The translations under genes and the position numbers were made by a program. Shown here piece after piece: positions 3,001-60,809 of a stretch of DNA of 64,000 nt; the stretch's first letter is position 1; each line of letters opens with the position of its first letter. The notes below the pieces were generated by a model. That model was not told where the DNA came from. It saw only the letters and a list, made by a program, of their open reading frames with translations, and ran no database searches. The DNA is taken from contig NW_005434666.1 of the NCBI RefSeq assembly GCF_000315625.1, forward strand, positions 321,781-385,780, given 5' to 3'. Origin of the DNA: Guillardia theta CCMP2712 (taxonomy: Eukaryota > Protista > Cryptophyta).

Positions 3001-6000
3001 CGGCAGCAGGAGCGCTGAAATATTCCACCCCAACGTCCAGGAAGCCCTCCAACCTCAACTTCTCCTTAAACCCTCGGGGACGCGCAGAGAAAACCGGCTG
3101 GAGCTCTCTTTGCACAGTCTGGACGAAGGAGACTGACTGATATGGAGCAGAATCTTGATAGTTCAGAGTGAAGTTCCTCCCTGCCTCCACCAGGAGCTCC
3201 ACTGTGGAACCTTGGGGATAAATGCAGGTTGCCATGCCAGTGTCTCTCAGGAGAAGGGTCCCTGCAAAGTACTGCGGCTCCTGCTGGCTTCTCCTGAGGA
3301 GGATGGTGCAGTTTGACAGAGGAGAAGAGACGGAGACGGAGACGGAGTCCTCGAGGACGTCAAGGCCGAAGAGGCGGATAGAGACTTTGTCTCCCAGGCG
3401 AGGAGATGGGGGAGAGATGAAGAAGACCGATTGCGCGGAAGCTGCGACAGAGGTTGAGTTGCTGAAGACAACTGGCTGCGGCATCGAAGAGTTGTACTCC
3501 ACCGTCAAGTTGGATCCAACAGGGAGAGTTTGAGAGCCTCCGATCTGATAGAGGTCGAAGAATGCAGTGAGAGACGGAGGACTCGTATGGTCTGCGGTCA
3601 ACAGGACTTGTTCGCTCCGATTGAGGTAACTCAACGTGACGAAAGGTTTTGTGACATTTCTGCTGTCTTGCAGCAACCTCAAGTATTGTTGATCGAACAC
3701 CTGGATCATCATTCGCCCAGCAAACTGCACGTGCTGAAGCACAATTTTCACCCTAGGGAAGTACTGTACTGTGCGGACGATGACGTGATTGAACGGCGAC
3801 ACGTCCATGTAGGTAACACTGATCGTATGCCCCGTGGCAGTCTGCAAGCTGTGACTCAGGACCTGGTCATAGCCAACGGTCGCCGTGAAGACTCCAGTTG
3901 ACAGTCCAGTCTCAACAAGCTTGACAACGATGCGATCTGAGAACGAGCTGCTGTCCACATGGGCAGAAGCCTCATCAACTTGTTGGTCGTTGAGATTCAG
4001 GTCCTGGTCTTCAACCTTGAGCAATGGACGTGAGCTATAGTAAGGTCCACGTCATCAGCCTTACCCTGACGTCAACGTCCTGCTCCTCGTAAGGGTAGAC
4101 AGGATCGACGACGAGGACGGCAGTGAAACTTTCCACGATCTTCACAACCTCCATGGCAACCCTGGAGAGTGAGCGAGTGAGCGATGGGAGCATGCAATTC
4201 AACAGGTTATTGTACGAGGTTGCCGGAGATCTGTCGACGTACTCGATGAAAACTTCATCTCCAGCGCTGACCACCAGCTCAGCATCAGCTTGGCTGTTAG
4301 CTGGACAGAAGTAGATTGCTGAAGGGTCTCCCGGGGCCATCAGCGAGTTGATGTTGGAGCAGAAACTACTTAGCTGCCTTGACGTCTCTTCTTTGAGCAT
4401 GACCGAGCCCACGAAGCTGCGGGGACGACGTCAACGCAAACAGGGGGGGGGGCAGGAGAAGGAAGGGAGACAAATACCTTCCTGTCTTGAGGCCATCGTT
4501 GATGAGCACAACCGTCTGGTTGCCGTACCTCATGACTCCCGCCGTGCCCAGCACATACAGGCGCACGTCGACACTCTGGACGCTGACCAGGTCGAGATCC
4601 AGCAACTGGATCGAGAGGTTCGTTCCCGACTTGGCGACCTTTGGTGTCAAAATCCTAGAGATTGAACCAGACTGCACGACACTGATCGTGCTGAAACGCA
4701 ACTTCCCAGCTGCGTCCGAGCTGCTTGGAGCGTCCAGGTATGTGACGTTCAGCACATCCCCAGCTAGGACATGAATCACTCCGTCCTGCTGATCATCGAC
4801 AACGGGGCTGTCGTGAGTGAGGAGGACTCCCGTAAAGACCGCGGAGCTGGGAGCAGTCTCCGACAACATGACGACCTCCGCTCGCTCCTTCCCAGCCCTA
4901 ACGACCACAGAGGAGCAAAGGGTGAAGTTGGTACAGTAAGGATTGACAGCCTTGTCTAGCATTGGGATGGAGAGCGAGGATTCTGCACTCTGGACCGTCA
5001 CGTTGACAGTGTCAATGACCAGGTTGTTCAAGTTCCTGTCGGTGTCGTTGACAATGATGACCAGCGAGGATCCAGCAGGAAGGGACGCGCTTGTCACTCC
5101 AGTCGATCCTGTCTGAAAGGTCCCACAGATCGCTGGAACGCTGCAGGAGAAGCTCGGACCGCAAGTACCAGCGTACTGCAAGCTCTCAGCACAGTAGGGG
5201 TTGCGGTCAAAGAGGAAGGAAGGTATGATTTGCGGACAAGCCCCAGAGGAGGAGGAGCAGTCGCTGCCGAAGACGAATTCCTTGATGATTTGCCGCCGTG
5301 GGATGCCCGTGGGGTTTGTGTAAGTGACCACAAGGCGCGAGCCAGGCTTCGGGACGAGATTCGCCTGCTTGAAACGGTCAAAAATTTCTCCTCCACACTA
5401 GAGGCAAGTATTTGGACCTGCGCGAATACGACAGAGGCGCCGTAGAGGGACAGGCTCTTGTTGGCCTCGTATAGGGTTGGAGTGTTGACAGGCCCCGAGT
5501 CCAACTTGTACGTGATCTGAAGGTTCGAGAGAACCGCAGGAGATGGGTCTTGGACGATCAAGGTAATGTTCGGAACTGTGTACAGCAAGGTGGAGGGAGC
5601 AACGGAGAGCCAACCTGGTCTACATCTCAGCAAAATGAACCACCGGGGGCAAATGGAGAAGAAGGGAGAGCGCGAGGGCAGAGAGCGAGCTAGATGCAAG
5701 CTTGCAAAAGGCGACTGACCGGGGTATCCCATGATGCATGAAGAGCTGATGGATGTCAGTGGATTCTTGTCAAAGTAGGTGAACGAGATCGTTTCTCCTT
5801 GCAGTACGCGGTATGTACTTCCTTGCACCGCTGCTGCTGCGTCTGCAGTGAGGATCGACGCTGTGAAGACTCCGCTGGTAGCTGCTGTCTCCGTCAGAGT
5901 CACGTTCTGATCGAACGCTGGAGAACTGACGTGCACCAGGACCAAGCAGCTGCAGGACGATCAGAACAGTCACAGCTATGAGCACGGGAAAGCTCACCTG

Positions 6001-8560
6001 TCGATCCCGTCCGAGACATCCAGGTCCTTGTCAGACACAGTGATCATGATGGATCTTCCTATCTCACACTTGCCAGCATCAGAATCCGTCTGTACCACAT
6101 TCAAGATGCCCGTCCGTTGGGTGTCGATGACTTTCCTTACTGCCGACGCGCCGGCCGTCTGGTCGAAGTATTCAAGAGTGAAGGGGTAGGACTGAACCCC
6201 TGTGAGAATGGGAAACTCCAGCATCGCACTGCCGCTGCCCCTCTGCCCCACCGACACTTGAGCTGAGAAACTGGAAGAGTCGAGTCCATCCTCAGTCAAG
6301 TTGAGCGTGATCGATCCATCGGAGGAGGTGAGATTCAGCAGGCCTACGTAGGACTCCGACATGACCGGGTCCCGGTTCAAGTCCGCATCTACCACAAAGA
6401 CCACCAGCGAGCTGATTCCCGCACCAACCTTAGAAGTCGAGGTGGTCATGGACCCTTGGTGTCCGAACTCAAGGCTTGCATTCAAGTACCTCCAGCCCTG
6501 AGTTGTCATATCAGGGTAAGAGACCAGGAAGCTGATCGGAGTGCCGCTGGTTGACAGGTTTCTCTGCAGCACCGCTTGATAGGCCGACTCAAGGTCAAGA
6601 GCCCCGGTGAAACTTCCCGCATCTAGTCCTGTTTCCAACAGCTTCACGGTAGAAAGGAGAGCAGACTCGAATTGGAGCTGTACAGAGATCTCGTCTTGGA
6701 AGAAAGGGTCGAAGTTCGCGTCCAAGTCCATGACAGAGACAGAAATCGAATGATTGTGCAGTACGGTGGATGAAGGTAGAGAGAGAGAGCCGGGGGTGTA
6801 GATTCGCAGGAGTTTCTGACAGAGCAACGGAGGGGAGTAGTCTATGTAGGAGAACGAGATGAAGGCGTCGGACCACGAGTAGGGCAGGGAAGAAATGCTC
6901 AAAAGCTTTTCGTACGAGCTGCTTGTTGCGATCTCCATCTTCTGACCGAAACTGTTTGTTCCCTGCTGAATCCAGACGGTGGGTCCGAAGTGATCGACTT
7001 GAGACCAAAAATCACTTGAAATATCGAGTTCTTCGTAGATATCATTGTCAACCACTGTTATTGAGATTGGAGATGATGGCAGGATATTATGATTCGGAAT
7101 CATTTCTATCTGGGCTTCTATATCCTTGCTGGCAAATATTGTGATATCCCTGGTCTGACCGTCGTCCTGAACATCCAGGTAGGAGATGGAAAGATTTGCA
7201 GAGCTACTGATATCGTTTGAGAGCTTTGTCGTGAACACTCCAGTACTCTCCCCCGTCTCGAACAGTACCAAGCTGATCGTTGCGGCATCATGATGTATCG
7301 ACGATGAAATGTTTTCAATTGCTGACGGGTCAAGGTTCCTGTCCGAATCTCTTATCTCCAACATTTTGTAGAATGATGCATTTGGAGATGCGAAGAACGG
7401 TCCGAAGGGACTTGTGCTTGAGGCTTTCCAAAGTTTGATGGTTGCATTAGAAAGCACAGGGACGTAAACGACCTATGAGGTATGGGTCAGTTTGAAACTT
7501 CCTTCGACTGGAGACATACCTGTTCAAGACTCGAAACTTCCGAGGTGTATGAGAAAGCTATCAGATCGTGGACTTCAATGCCAAGTATACTATTTTCGAC
7601 AAGTCGACTCAATCCCAGACTTGTTGACAAGTTCCCCGCAAATTCACCCTTCATTTCATCTACCAACCCCAGTGTAAAATTGTATCCCGGGCGCCTCTGG
7701 GATGAAACAAAAATGGAAGCATTTCGAGAATTTCTGACATTGGTATCGAAGACTCTGACAGAAACTCGCGCACCGCTCAGGAGAGGCAGAGCAGGGGGGT
7801 CGAGAACGATCGACGGCCTGCAATAGATCCGAACGCTTGCGTTGAGAGTTCCGACGACGTTCGTGGAAACGGGGCTGTACATGAGAAGTAAGCTGTAAGC
7901 TGCAGCAGACTTGAGATCTTGGCAAGGCATGCTCAAAGTGAATTGGTCATTGTGAGTAGAAATCGTGGTATGTAGCGCGTCAGAATGTGTCTGGATTGCT
8001 GATAGAAATGTTCCCGGAAGCTGCTGGTAGAGAACAACATTCGTGATGTTGTTGCACGAGTCCAGTATACAGATCTTCAGGGTAGCGTTCACTGTTTGGT
8101 ATTGTTGGGCATTTCCATCCTGCAGTTTGACTTGCAGCACCGACCCTAGAAGAATCTGATGTGGCACTATGAAATTGGGTAGATCATAAACATGAACTGG
8201 AGTTGATAAAGTACACGAAGAGTTAGCTTCAAAGTAGATCTCGAGGGGCTCTCCTGGCAGTACTGCCACAGTGTTGCTAGGCAGAATCTGAAGTTCTGAA
8301 CGCCTCACCGTCGTTACGGTCGCCGTATAAGAGGATGAATCATTCCTGCGCAACTGGACTATTCTGCTAGAAGCATTTGATAGTTTTTGAGAGATAGTTG
8401 CATATACAAATTCTGGCCCTGCTGGCAAACCGCCTAGTGAAACAGCAAACGATTCACCTACCGTAACAGACTGCGGCGTTACTAAAAGTTGCTGGGCGTT
8501 CACGACCTCGGCGATTCCCATGAAAAGCAGGAGCGCACGAACGTTCTTGAAGCTGTACAT
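1..8560 (-). CDS. Giant secreted/surface protein (>2,500 aa, multi-exon, 3' end outside window) with repeated DxDxN...LxETGxxTGxF beta-rich modules
   Basis: ATG 8560 with signal peptide MYSFKNVRALLLFMGIAEVVNA. Consecutive minus-strand ORFs (7487-8560, 5994-7457, 5094-5945, 4366-5331, 2399-4024, 1546-2145, 1189-1539, 978-1184) are separated by short intron-sized gaps and share the repeat motif. Confidence 0.8.
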
Positions 8561-53877: not shown

Positions 53878-54137
53878 TGCTGATCCTGGGAACAGGTTTA
53901 CCTCTATAGGCGGGACCTTCCGGAGGTTACTTAGAGGGTCCTATATGATTGAGTAAATATTTACTCAAGTTTTCCTAATTGATTTTCCTAATAGGGACTT
54001 AGCGAAAATGCTGCTGCAGTCATCACCATGGAAGGATGTGTAGGTTACAAGAGACTCAGTAGTCGCATCATGTCATGTGCTGGAAAGTGACGTTTTAATG
54101 ATATCTCCATGAAATAGTCATTCATTTCACACCCTTC

Positions 54138-57100
54138 CTATGTTAATATCTCATTCCGTTTGCGTTTTCTTGAAGCTGACTGCGATTTTCTTGAAGCTGA
54201 CTGCGATATCCATGCGGCCTGCTTCGAAGGCCTCATGAGGTCTGATACAGTCATCCATGACAACTCAGAGAATCGTCCCTCTGTCGCCTCCAGTCCTCTC
54301 AATCTTGTGACTCGCTCGTATTCCTCAATCAAGAAATTCTCACATTGCTGATATATGAAGTCTGCTTCTTCCCGATCTGGATCGCTATTGTAAATGTTCA
54401 AGGCTCTTGCTTCTCTTTCTATCACTTTGATGAGGTATCGCAAATCACTCAGCCTTCGACCGTCCGAGGTTGCTGGGGAGAAATCAGTGCCCCTCACTTC
54501 TTTGAAAGGTTTATGTCCTCGCTCTGCATTTCCAAAGTGCCAGAGAATCCATACGTCATATGTCTTCATTCCTCTCCAGTCATGTTGTGATAGCGGGATG
54601 GCATCGGATGCTTCAACTTCGCCTGCTTCGCTGGAGGCTGCCTCGCTTGCGGCAGCCCCGCCAGTCCTCTCCCTTTCTGCGTTGTCGCTGCCCTGCCCGT
54701 CATTCAAGTTACCACTGCTGACACGTGCGTCCTGCGACGCAGCCGATGGAGGACCCCTGCTCTCGGCTCCCGTCGTCGTTGTCTGTACACCGGATTGACT
54801 TCCCCTCCATTCCATCGTGCCGTTTCCTGCCATTTGTAGCAATTCAGGAAAAGCTTCTAGCAATTCCTTGTGCTTTAGTACCAATTCCTTGTTCTTTTGT
54901 ACCAATTCCTTGTTTGATTGTACCAATTCCTTGTTTGATTGTACCAATTCCTTGTTCTTTTGTGCCAATTCCTTGTTTGATTGTATCAATTCCTCGCTTG
55001 ATTTTACGATGGCTGCTTCCATCTCTTCGCTCAAGCCGCATTGCAAACCTGCCGCATTGCAAACCTCACCAGGTCCTCTCTGGCTTCTTCTGACCCTATC
55101 TGCCTGAAATTCTTGTCGGATAGTGGTCGTTACAGCTGCAGTCAATTCTGTCGTCACAGCTTGAGTCACCTCGCCAGGCAAAACATTCATCTGCTTGAGA
55201 AGGCATACATGTGAAGGTATTCCTGTCGCTGTTCGCCCATGACTTTCTATCGTAACATGCTGCCTTAGCGTCTGTACAAAACCTGAATGCAAGAACAGGG
55301 TGGTTCGAAACAAGGGGTGATTCTTTGGCATCACCTCTCGAAGAAACTGTTCGTGGTATATCACTGATGCCAACCCAACTTCAACCACGGCGCGCGTCCG
55401 CGGTGTTGACACATATGGAAATACAAGTTTCACAATCTCGTTGACTCGTTCTCTGCTCTCCTGATCCGTGGTGTGAAAAATTGGTGGTAAAATTGCAAAA
55501 TCCGGGTGCTGAGTCGGCAACCCTGAGGCTATTCTTCCCACATGCTGATCGCCAGCTCGTTCATACCTCATCATAGCGGCTATGTCATTCATCCCACAGA
55601 CCATTCCAACACTGAGTTTCACTTACCTCATATCCGTGTCTTGAATTGCTCCTATCTTCCATCCTGCCCTTACACTGATCGCACCAACGGAAGAAGCAGC
55701 GGTGGTTCCGGCTGCGCAGTATGTCGCGCTTCCTTTACGAATACTGTGTGATCCTGTTTCATCATTTCACACTGAAGCACGGTTCTCAATTCCACTTCCT
55801 CCATGTGTTAGTACCTAAGTCTCCCACACGCTGACCCTTCTCATCTAGTGCCTGCTGGATATCATGGTCCTTCAGTAATCGCTGGCAGAAAAGCTTGCGG
55901 AATCGTTCATATTGTCTTTGACCTGTCCGGCAAGGAAACAAAAAGTAGGTGAATGTATAGGTATCACTTACAGGAAGTATACCTGGAAACAGTTTGCCAC
56001 GAGCTGCAGTATGATCCGCTCCATAGATCAACCAATAAATCCCTGTATCTTCAGTTATCACATACTACTCCGTAAGGCAACACGGATACCGACCTAAAGC
56101 CAAGAACGGGCATATTTCCGGTTTGGTAGGATTGCAATACACGTGTTTTGGATCTCTAGCGCGATCACCTGACTGATCGTCTTTCTGATGAATGACAAAA
56201 AATCTGAGAGAGTCTTCAGAAAAGTCCATATGGTTGTACATCAGAGCAGCTGTGTTACTGGACCGACTCATTAGATTCCAGCCAAGAATCATGAACGTTC
56301 GACCCCAAATGAACTCTCGGTCTACCTTGGTCAACATTACCTTGCCCAATAACTGGTAGATACAAAAAGGCAGAGGGTCCTTTCCCATGGTCAACTTCGC
56401 ACTCCTGTCCCTAGCATTCTGCGTGTTGCATTTTTGTTTCAACCCAACATAATGTTCAGTCAAAGCAAGCTGGAACTGGGATAAACGTTCCACTGGCATG
56501 TCATAGAAATGTAAAATGTACATGAGTGCGGATCTGTAAGAGCAGCATGTTTCAAAAGAAAGATCAGGTTTGATTCTCAGGCAGTGTGCTATCCAGAACA
56601 TGAAATGCTGCACTGTCAACTTGTCGAAGTCTATGGGTTTGATATCCTTTTGAGCCAAGATTTCTCTCAAATATTTTTGAGTAGGTAGTCCGTCTTCAAT
56701 CTTGGTGATTACGTGGTCGGCATCATTCCGGGCTATGTCCGCCTTCATGTCTGCAGTTATCAGGCCCAATTTATCGTCATTTGCAAATATAAATTGAATG
56801 AATCGAACCATTTGACCTCGATACATGACACGGGTGCTTCCAGCGAGAGCGTTATTCAAAATAGCAGCTATATCCCGTTCCAGTACCGCGAAATCTTCCA
56901 TTCTCAACTGTTCAGCTGTAACACTTGTCGTCTTCCGACGCCGTCTAGTATGGGTAGGTTGAGGATCTTGGTCACCGGTAATCGCGCTTGATCCCACTGG
57001 AATCGCAGGGACTGCCAGGATCCTGCTAAGTTGCGAGCAGGAGGGCTCTTGCTCGCATGCATTGGATTTATCTGGACTTCCCGCACATATTGCATGGAAA

Positions 57101-57216
57101 TAACGTCGGCATTTCTCGCATTGTCGCACAGGGGATGTAGAGAGATGTTCTTGGTTGATTTTGCATTGCGATGTCTCCTGAAACAAGCATGATGGGGCTT
57201 GAGGTCCCATCTGCAT
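54138..57216 (-). CDS. Crypton-type tyrosine recombinase (NDC10-II-like YR core; N-terminal Cys/His finger; C-terminal GCR1_C-like region)
   Basis: With four introns removed: WNLMSRSSN, HQKDDQSG..DPKHVYCNPTKPEICPFLALGIYW, LFPGQRQYERF, DLGSHSIRKGSATY, RAGWKIGAIQDTDMRYERAGDQHVGRIASGLP. C-terminal DVWILWHFGN..HKPF and NLS-like RKRKR. Confidence 0.85.
54860..54992. repeat. 21-bp tandem repeat encoding ELVQ(S/K)NK heptads within the recombinase
   Basis: About 6 copies of aattccttgtttgattgtacc and variants. Confidence 0.9.
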
Positions 57217-57632
57217 TTCTTGCCACTCCGGATGATGGTTTAGTCAAATACAAAATATTTTTCTAGCTTTCTTCTGAGGCAGACTTGAAACTTCTAATAT
57301 TAAAAATTCCCGGAATAAGTGAGGGGGACTTCATCGCGTGCAGCCCTTTCCGGAGAGCCCGCATTCCCCCGCTTGACCACTCCGGAATGCCCTCATCCAG
57401 GCCCTCATACCCTCTCCGGAACACCCTACCTGCTACCCTGACCCTACCGGACCCATACCGGACGTGGGTAGGGTACAGAAAATTATCTAAAATAAATGGA
57501 TAGGAAGATCAATAGAATAAGTAAATCTTGTGTTGGGGTATGGGTGGTACCCTAGCCAGTGGTTGTTGGGAGGCGGTTAGTTGAAAGTCGATGTTGCCGC
57601 CGCCGTCGCTCGTTCGCTATGAGGAGCCCACG

Positions 57633-58904: not shown

Positions 58905-59883
58905 TCACACATCCAACCTGTTCTTCCGATTCGAGGATTTGCCCTCATCGTTGAAGATCCTCCAGGCAAACAATGCGGCCATGACCAAGCATGCAACACA
59001 TGGGACCCACATGCTTTCGTTGTAAATCTGGTGTTGTATATCAAGAAACAACTTCACGGCTGCAACCATGTTTGCCATGACAAAGAACCTCGCAATCACT
59101 AAGCGAGATGCCTGCTCCTTGATGAATCCAGCGGACAGAGCAAGGTAGGACGTTGCAAGGAGAAAGCATCCCAGCAAGGTGAAGATGGATGTACTAAATC
59201 CGCATCCAGCTAATTTCTCACACTTTCTAACTGTCCTGTCGGTTACGATATCACGGACAAAATCTGCGCTGAAGAGCAGCGAGATTCCACTTAACGACAG
59301 GATACAGCCTTGTCCCCAAAAGATCTCACGCATCGGAGAGACAGGGTTTCGTATCTTACTCGTGTTAATCCTTAGCTTTGGGAAGAAGAGGCAGAATGTG
59401 GCGTTGGACCAAGGGGACACTCTCGAGAAGAACCACGGAGAAATGCTTTGATGGCGGGAGGCGCAGAAGAAGAGCAGCCAAGTGATTCTTCTCACAACTC
59501 AAGGAGGGAGGAGAGAGGTGATCAGTCAGGAATGAACGGAGAGAACCCGTAGACGGGGCGGGAGGGGCGGGAGGGGCGGGAGCAGGGGAAAGGGAGGAGG
59601 AGCTGTTGACGACAAAGGGAAAGCGATCCTTGTGACGCAACATGTGCCCTCATCCCCTAACAATTCGGACGGGCTGGATGAGGGGCCCAGTGAGGTGGCA
59701 AAGGCGGAATTGAGCGGGGACGAGGTCCCCGTGCGAAGAGGCAGAGGACGACTCCTGACAGACATGCTCTCCAAGGTAAGGAGGCGAGGACGACAGCTGG
59801 TCATGGCGCGTGCGAGCGAGACGCTTCCTGTTGCCTTCTGCCGCTTTTTCATGCTGAATCTGGATGCCTTCGAACCCATGCAT
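58905..59883 (-). CDS. Hypothetical multi-pass membrane protein
   Basis: ORF 58905-59495 has ~4-5 hydrophobic helices. An upstream exon is probably in 59620-59883. Confidence 0.5.
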
Positions 59884-60809
59884 CTGTCCTCTCGCTCCCT
59901 CTCACAGTTGCCTCCACATGCCGTTCCTCGTTGACCCCCTCTCCTCGCTATGCCGTGGTGTCGGCTGATGATTTTTCGTATCCTCGTTGGCAATATCGAC
60001 TCTTCCTCGATGCCTCCGTATCTTATGTTTTGGCCATGTTGATATCTAATGTCTGGTTCTATCTTCCATCTCCCATCTCAAACCATGGTTCGTTCGTGCT
60101 GATTGTGATTCGGTAGAAGTCAACCAACTCATTGTAGATACCTGATATTGCTACTGCTTTCTCTCAACACCTGACTGATCCGCCTCATCTTCTTGATCCT
60201 GTAAATCTATGCCCCTCTTCCATGAACACTTGGTGATGATACCCTCAAAGTTCGGCTTATTTTTCATTCCGGCGTGCTTCGTTAAATCCTATTTTTGACA
60301 TGGCAACTGCAGCTTGAGACTGTAGCTGCATTCTTAGCTGGCCACCATGCTGGAGACACCGGTCCTGGTGGATCCTCCAAGGTGAACATCGAGCGCTGTC
60401 CCTCCCTTCTCCTTCGTGCTGCATCGTGAATCAATGAACTCAGGGACCCTGCGCTATTGCCGGCATGTTCGGATGCGCTCCTGCCGCTGCTTCGGAGGAA
60501 TACGGATCTGTGCGTCTTTCTGATGAGTCTCGTCTTTTCTTGACACCCTTTGCAGCCCTGGTACCCTGCTGACGAGGGCGGCATTGCTCCATGGCCCACC
60601 ACCATGTCCTCGTAAACTCGTCGAGGACCGGCAAGACAACCTCCAACTTACGCTCGTCGTGAATTTGTGCGATTAAAAGGATGAAATTTTGACAGCCACA
60701 GCCTAACAGTTGGCATTTGGTTGATCTTAATTGAGTGTGGCTGCATGTTTCATGTTTCATCCTTGATTTCACAGGATCGTGATTTGGAAATTTATTTTTC
60801 AACTTGTGA

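Follow-up and report, generated by a model that had tools for sequence, protein, structure and literature searches.

To our knowledge, few eukaryotic transposons have received as little study as the Cryptons (Goodwin et al. 2003), and we know of no transposition assay for any of them. The described elements to which the locus analysed here is best compared, CryptonS, occur in oomycetes and a diatom and have a C-terminal region that is conserved and distinct from GCR1_C (Kojima & Jurka 2011, PMC3212892). The ends of Cryptons are short direct repeats (4-6 bp) that serve as recombination substrates, and most CryptonS have TATGG termini (PMC3212892). Furthermore, a number of host genes descend from Crypton recombinases and lack the catalytic tyrosine, i.e., the DUF3504 genes KCTD1, ZMYM2-4, QRICH1, and WOC, and the yeast genes Ndc10/Cbf2 and Gcr1 (PMC3212892). 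In this work, we analysed a gene of the cryptophyte Guillardia theta CCMP2712, located on a stretch of 64,000 nucleotides of contig NW_005434666.1 (positions 321,781 to 385,780; this whole stretch is referred to as the window, and all coordinates are those of the window). An earlier note on the same DNA had identified the gene as coding for a Crypton-type tyrosine recombinase, intact except for an aspartate at the position of the catalytic tyrosine, and this identification was borne out. The literature that we searched contained no description of Guillardia Cryptons. The gene is organized as follows:

57216-54138, minus strand: the whole coding gene, with five exons and 948 codons, whose frame is open once four GT..AG introns are removed.
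57216-56094, 56042-55983, 55922-55815, 55753-55627, and 55566-54138, minus strand: the five exons.

The comparison with CryptonS revealed several shared traits. The unit, of about 3.2-3.5 kb, harbors a single intron-containing tyrosine recombinase gene and lacks both a reverse transcriptase and long repeats, terminal or inverted; its protein, compared with CryptonS by their published description, has a conserved C-terminal region and no GCR1_C; and the nearest clusters of the Atlas, for both features and shape, are diatom and oomycete proteins, some of them with NDC10_II. The Atlas feature search listed GCR1_C clusters at 0.84, below the trusted level. On the other hand, the locus differs from CryptonS in its host, a cryptophyte, in that the search for TATGG and for further short direct repeats at the termini found none, and in the presence of Asp in place of the catalytic Tyr. 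The proteins of the family consist of a core-binding domain, a catalytic domain similar to that of Cre, and a middle and a C-terminal region that are both conserved, a layout that resembles that of CryptonS.

The window gene shares with the Crypton-derived host genes the origin from a Crypton recombinase and the loss of the catalytic Tyr. However, those genes have lost most of the catalytic tetrad, and all of them both the Tyr and the second Arg, whereas the window gene has lost the Tyr only. Moreover, they are ancient, single-copy genes with conserved orthologs, whereas three word searches and one exhaustive search retrieved no ortholog of the window gene, and no signal of purifying selection was found on its branch. 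Unlike them, the window gene also lacks a DUF3504 match.

As for the other enzymes of the superfamily, the window protein has in common with Cre (and with XerH, lambda Int, Tn1549 Int, and Flp) the two-domain fold of the family, a nearly equal spacing of the R-K-H-x-x-R-W set, and a nucleophile position located nine residues after the Trp (W+9). It differs from Cre in a sequence identity of only about 13%, in an N-terminal extension, in about 470 extra residues following the catalytic domain, which make up a helical region in the middle, a coiled coil, a disordered linker, and a C-terminal domain, and in the lack of a Tyr at the nucleophile position of the window copy.

Since neither exon 1 on its own nor two profiles of the family gave anything significant in HMMER searches against the PDB sequences, the fold was shown by structure prediction. 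The homologous part of a family member that is 38% identical to the window protein (P0016:9-376) was modelled with AlphaFold2 (AF2) from a 66-row alignment including exon 1 of the window gene, and the model had a predicted local distance difference test score (pLDDT) of 94 and a predicted template modelling score (pTM) of 0.88. The top 50 PDB matches retrieved by Foldseek with this model were all tyrosine recombinases (Cre, XerH, Flp, Tn1549 integrase, and lambda integrase). The VIA-align superposition on Cre (Z 19.1, root-mean-square deviation 3.1 Å, 271 residues) places model residues 1-334 on Cre 28-319; in this register, model residue 334 lies on Cre 319, which brings the family Trp and the family Tyr onto the Cre residues that we take to be W315 and Y324, respectively. 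According to this model, the family has the two-domain Cre/lambda-Int fold, with an N-terminal core-binding domain and a C-terminal catalytic domain, in agreement with the homology to the tyrosine recombinases proposed in the earlier note. The corresponding stretch of the window gene, which is interrupted by all four introns, is the following:

56895-55545, minus strand: core-binding (SAM-like) and catalytic domain, residues ~108-480, assigned from the P0016 model and from the matches to Phage_int_SAM_4 in 24 of 66 family members.

The family of which the protein is a member is found in protists and is very large. The exhaustive profile search retrieved 9,735 cluster representatives (family proteins clustered at 50% identity) with E<=1e-3, of which 2,366 reached E<=1e-30. 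The 150 best matches listed mostly span nearly the whole profile; the best ones are about 450-990 residues long and sit on contigs of 2-3 kb from metagenomes or metatranscriptomes. From the word searches, we retrieved a G. theta transcript protein, 60% identical and named core-binding-domain protein in its source, along with two proteins from Hanusia phi and seven unnamed proteins. Probing Pfam with exon 1 and exon 5 did not retrieve any significant family, and neither DUF3504 nor NDC10_II matched these exons above threshold. In the 66 family members, the weak, sub-threshold Pfam matches other than those to Phage_int_SAM_4 were to Phage_integrase (3/66) and NDC10_II (3/66). The 64-kb window contains no paralog of the gene.

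The spliced model was aligned with 155 family proteins. The columns of R318, K345, H433, R436, and W462 are invariant or nearly so among these relatives, and the motifs listed in the earlier note, together with the Asp at W+9 and the Tyr at W+12, were all found at the coordinates given there:

56265-56263, minus strand: Arg318, the first catalytic Arg, in LMSR; R in 152/152 ungapped relatives.
56184-56182, minus strand: Lys345, the catalytic Lys, in HQK; K in 152/153 relatives.
55748-55737, minus strand: His433-x-x-Arg436, in HSIRK; H in 149/152 and R in 152/152 relatives.
55661-55659, minus strand: Trp462, in AGW, the equivalent of Cre W315; W in 150/152 relatives.
55634-55632, minus strand: codon 471, GAT, coding for Asp at W+9; this is the nucleophile column, with Tyr in 152/154 relatives.
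55565-55563, minus strand: codon 474, TAT, coding for Tyr at W+12, a variable aromatic position.

Thus, the window protein possesses the tyrosine recombinase set R, K, H-x-x-R, and W, and lacks the nucleophilic Tyr at W+9, where Asp471 is found. The note had placed the nucleophile nine residues after the W/H of the active site, and this holds for the family, on the basis of both the column counts and the fold register, which matches Cre Y324. The only two non-Tyr residues of this column, among 154 sequences, belong to Hanusia phi.

In principle, the recombinase could still be active, either through Tyr474, which lies about one helical turn away from position 471, or through a Tyr supplied in trans, as in Flp. 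Flp, which cleaves in trans, has a spacing of 13 between W and Y; Cre cleaves in cis with a Tyr at W+9. The presence of a Tyr at +12 and the intactness of the rest of the active site are compatible with this idea, and Tyr474 was the initial guess for the true nucleophile. It was ruled out by the 155-sequence alignment, which puts the conserved Tyr at +9, while the +12 column is variable (Y 84, F 26, E 9, H 8, and Q 7 are its commonest residues); Phe, Glu, His, or Gln often stand there. The fold and the spacing of the family also match those of Cre, and other conserved residues of the window protein have been changing too (P451S and P591S). According to these data, a still active enzyme is the least probable of all the explanations considered.

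A different question is whether the Asp codon is genuine. If it had arisen by an error of assembly or sequencing, or by a mutation confined to a single culture line, the natural gene would have a Tyr. To check this, 3,401 letters (54000-57400) were compared with four public runs: X1 and X3 (DNA-type contigs), X2 (cDNA-type contigs), and X22 (one raw RNA run). X1, X2, and X3 come from three studies, dated 2011, 2019, and 2021. GAT is covered in all three by contigs with zero differences (X1, 55403-55775; X2, 55624-55752; X3, 55403-55746), including spliced cDNA, and none of the four runs showed an alternative letter at 55632-55634, although contigs can hide a rare allele. Since the contigs of three studies show GAT, and not the TAT that the earlier note had allowed for, the codon is not an assembly error of the window. 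Only two organism labels occur among the runs that contain the gene, all of which may go back to a single strain in culture, and contigs can drop rare variants, which leaves some room for an artefact; even so, a mutation of the culture line would be a special case of a dead copy anyway. We therefore consider an artefact very unlikely.

The ancestral state of codon 471 can be read from two close relatives, as the earlier note had proposed. The first one (L001), a metagenomic contig of 1.6 kb from the European Nucleotide Archive (ENA), shares 88-90% DNA identity with the window gene and reads TAT TTG in the region of codon 471; the second one (L002), a metagenomic contig of 6.9 kb from the Joint Genome Institute (JGI), shares 93% DNA identity over 56063-55600 and reads TAT ATG. 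They may represent the same species, a paralog, or a sister species. Because both read TAT, the GAT of the window copy is a derived T-to-G change (Tyr471Asp). Neither relative is undamaged: the 3' part of L001 contains frameshifts and its 5' end is rearranged, while L002 is a fragment with stops and frameshifts, whose flanks are unrelated to the window. This damage and the unrelated flanks have the appearance of a dispersed, decaying transposon family. L002 also harbors, at 4249-6141 on its minus strand, an open frame of 630 residues adjoining the decayed Crypton fragment.

Transcripts of the gene are still produced, and their splicing is correct. The 948-codon frame runs from the ATG at 57216 to the stop at 54140-54138 once the introns, whose removal had been postulated from the letters alone, are spliced out:

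56093-56043, minus strand: intron 1, 51 nt; joint 56041->56093, cut +1, present in X2.
55982-55923, minus strand: intron 2, 60 nt; joint 55920->55981, cut +2, present in X2, with a low depth (2.3) and a short side (25 letters).
55814-55754, minus strand: intron 3, 61 nt; joint 55752->55814, cut +1, present in X2, with a side of 112 letters.
55626-55567, minus strand: intron 4, 60 nt; joint 55563->55624, cut +3, present in X2, with a side of 129 letters.
54105-54109, minus strand: likely poly(A) addition site, where X22 reads stop with a T run and X1, X2, and X3 contigs diverge.

Intron 4 interrupts the codon of Arg473, between Asp471 and Tyr474. All four joints occur in X2 contigs with 0 letter differences and are absent from X1 and X3. 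Since the joined forms are found in the cDNA-type contigs and not in the DNA-type ones, they represent true RNA splicing rather than a processed DNA copy, and both the gene model and the splicing expected by the earlier note are thereby confirmed. In X22, nearly all the reads lie within the final ~230 nt of the gene (bins 54114-54341) and carry fixed differences from the window (54118 T>G, 54148 A>C, and 54249 A>T); reads stop in the T run at 54107. Because of these fixed differences, and because only the 3' end is common at >=95% identity, these reads derive from a more highly expressed paralog. The site at 54105-54109 is also the point where several paralogous contigs cease resembling the window.

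In the DNA runs of the organism, paralogous contigs match short stretches of the gene at >=95% identity, with scattered differences, and the summed DNA depth is about 10x the baseline at the 3' end (54114-54227). Over most of the gene, the depth of the exact-match contigs is 42-77, versus 62 for a flanking unique contig.

To evaluate the constraint acting on the gene, the window copy, L001, and L002 were aligned over about 800 coding sites, with about 20 changes in the window copy. The private changes are 18 nonsynonymous and 2 synonymous on the window branch, 12 and 16 on the L001 branch, and 35 and 9 on the L002 branch. The 18:2 ratio of the window copy shows no significant departure from what neutrality predicts (77% nonsynonymous sites; p=0.13), while it differs from the purifying pattern of L001 (12:16; Fisher p=0.001). 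Three of the derived changes fall at conserved positions, i.e., P451S (Pro in 145/153), Y471D, and P591S (Pro in 114/153). The private changes of the window copy, judged from this alignment, look like a release from constraint.

The earlier note had left the choice between a recently inactivated Crypton and a domesticated DNA-binding protein. The former fits better, in that the relatives with 88-93% identity keep TAT and decay, and the 18:2 ratio is neutral-like. Thus, with a confidence slightly above even, we read the locus as a Crypton copy that recently lost its nucleophile and is now decaying, and not as a new kind of gene. In this scenario, the events might be depicted as follows. The only gene of the element would encode a tyrosine recombinase, which would normally excise and reinsert the element through a covalent 3'-phosphotyrosine link to DNA. 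A single T-to-G change would then have turned TAT into GAT (Tyr471Asp), with R318, K345, H433, R436, and W462 being kept. In Cre or Flp, mutants with Phe in place of the Tyr bind their sites and pair them, and cannot cleave them. By analogy with these nucleophile mutants, we infer that the Asp471 protein would still fold, bind DNA, and pair with its partners, and that, forming no covalent intermediate, it would not cut or rejoin DNA by itself. The element would be unable to move itself, because no covalent 3'-phosphotyrosine intermediate would be formed, and the locus would represent a recently inactivated copy at the start of its decay, probably with no selected host function.

Several observations weigh against simple decay. 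The 948-codon frame, the start codon, and the four working introns are all intact; in a simulation, the whole coding sequence remained stop-free in only about 4% of the cases under 2.5% neutral drift, the value observed on the window branch, and in 26% at 1%. Within the part that was compared, the window copy has no indels of its own other than +6 nt and, by arithmetic from BLAST segments, about five additional units of a 21-nt heptad repeat, and these keep the frame. The window protein departs from the family at 4 of 51 conserved columns, and 20 of 150 presumably active members have >=4 such departures. The count of nonsynonymous and synonymous changes comes from about 800 coding sites and from two relatives of unestablished origin. 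The gene is essentially single-copy at >=95% identity, and so there is no sign of a recent transposition of this copy. Finally, no TATGG pair or other terminal direct repeat was found at the flanks of the gene, so that the ends of the element and its mobility are putative.

Many of these points would be expected under an early domestication, in which selection keeps a nucleophile-less protein that binds Crypton ends or host DNA, either as a trans-dominant inhibitor poisoning the recombinase assemblies of active paralogs or as a chromatin/DNA-binding factor. The long intact frame, the correct splicing, and the expression of exactly the window copy speak for it, as do the low chance of a stop-free frame under pure drift, the frame-preserving nature of all the indels, the retention of 5/6 active-site residues and of nearly all the conserved columns, and the single-copy state at >=95% identity; moreover, the nonsynonymous excess (18:2) could be adaptive. 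Two Hanusia phi proteins of the family (P0002 and P0003) also lack the Tyr. Against it, no ortholog with Asp was found, the Hanusia proteins being too distant (35-42% identical) to be orthologs; there is no purifying signal, and the 18:2 ratio is not significantly above neutral; the close, Tyr-bearing relatives are ordinary decaying copies; and the expression of the window copy is modest, most X22 reads deriving from a paralog. Domestication, the alternative put forward in the earlier note, was thus not shown, and we regard it as a tentative and rather doubtful possibility. Its narrower version, a first step of domestication in which a dead enzyme, held open by selection, blocks active paralogs at Crypton ends or serves as a DNA-binding factor, with an adaptive 18:2 ratio, seems to us unlikely.

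Whichever the case, the window copy is a natural active-site mutant standing beside Tyr-bearing relatives, and the pair could be used for testing whether Crypton recombinases work like Cre. If selection maintains the dead copy, the locus would show how Crypton-derived host genes (Ndc10, Gcr1, and the DUF3504 genes) begin; on present evidence, it is what transposon decay ordinarily yields.

The two Hanusia phi proteins are known from transcripts and have Phe and Met in the nucleophilic Tyr column. P0002, which also lacks the H-x-x-R and the Trp stretch, keeps the middle and C-terminal domains; this is the protein to which the identity of only 35-42% with the window protein refers. These features suggest independent dead or kept Crypton derivatives in the sister genus.

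The flanks of the gene were then inspected. Paralogous contigs diverge from the window at ~54107 and ~57299. TATGG does not occur downstream of the stop and occurs once upstream, at 57457. No long terminal repeats, direct or inverted, surround the gene, and neither a reverse transcriptase nor terminal inverted repeats were detected; the tyrosine recombinase gene is the single gene between the inositol monophosphatase gene and the next open reading frame upstream. A group of short palindromes was found near the start codon:

57227-57420, no strand assigned: four TCCGGA palindromes in the ~190 nt just upstream of the ATG, which are candidates for promoter elements or for sites bound by the recombinase.

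Five of the 11 TCCGGA sites of the window flank the gene, the fifth one lying downstream, at 53919, in a 13-nt near-palindrome. Three of the upstream sites are spaced by 32-34 nt and are included in a 26-nt direct repeat (57368-57393 and 57402-57427). From their arrangement, these sites could be either promoter elements or recombinase-binding sites marking element ends about 3.5 kb apart.

Regarding the neighbouring genes, the earlier note had placed the locus between an inositol monophosphatase and p28. The former was recovered with a Pfam match, while the latter was not, the upstream open reading frames (58908-59495 and 59529-59993) having no Pfam match:

53197-52586, minus strand: gene of the inositol monophosphatase family, immediately downstream (Pfam E 1e-46).
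63422-60813, minus strand: adenylate/guanylate cyclase domain gene, further upstream (Pfam E 3e-53).

Outside the recombinase core, three other regions of the protein were analysed:

57189-57037, minus strand: N-terminal stretch rich in Cys and His, residues 10-60, which may be a degenerate finger of the PHD/C1 type.
55007-54834, minus strand: 21-nt tandem repeat coding for KEL-V/A-Q-S/K-N heptads, with six overlapping copies of period 21.
54593-54141, minus strand: conserved C-terminal helical domain, residues ~798-948, with the motifs W..W..G and RLSD.R of the family consensus.

The N-terminal stretch has only weak, sub-threshold matches in Pfam (C1_1, E 0.11; PHD_2, E 0.12) and is followed by a basic run, RRRRK, at residues 91-95. 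The added finger of the earlier note was not supported by these values (E ~0.1), and its nuclear localization signal had been deduced from basic runs alone.

The heptads (residues 671-705) fall within a long helix predicted to form a coiled coil. The repeat had been viewed as an addition linked to domestication; however, it is also present in the Tyr-bearing L001, in a shorter version with about five fewer units (arithmetic from two BLAST segments). Since L001 has the repeat too, it is a feature of the subfamily and was not added when the Tyr was lost.

The part coded by exon 5 was modelled from the window's own sequence (pLDDT 79). In this model, a packed helical region directly after the active site is followed by two very long helices, a disordered linker, and the C-terminal helical domain, the latter with a pLDDT of 87-98; the protein ends in a basic run, RKRKR. 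Foldseek retrieved nothing from the PDB at E<=0.001 with the exon-5 model, and the shape search in the Atlas gave, as the nearest matches, unnamed oomycete clusters with weak template modelling (TM) scores of 0.33-0.41. The C-terminal parts of the 66 family members matched neither GCR1_C nor any shared family in Pfam. Lastly, exon 5 contains two perfect tandem duplications that leave the frame open, one of 16 nt in 55035-55066, preceding the heptad repeat, and one of 21 nt in 54165-54206, coding for the repeated SASRKSQ near the C-terminus.

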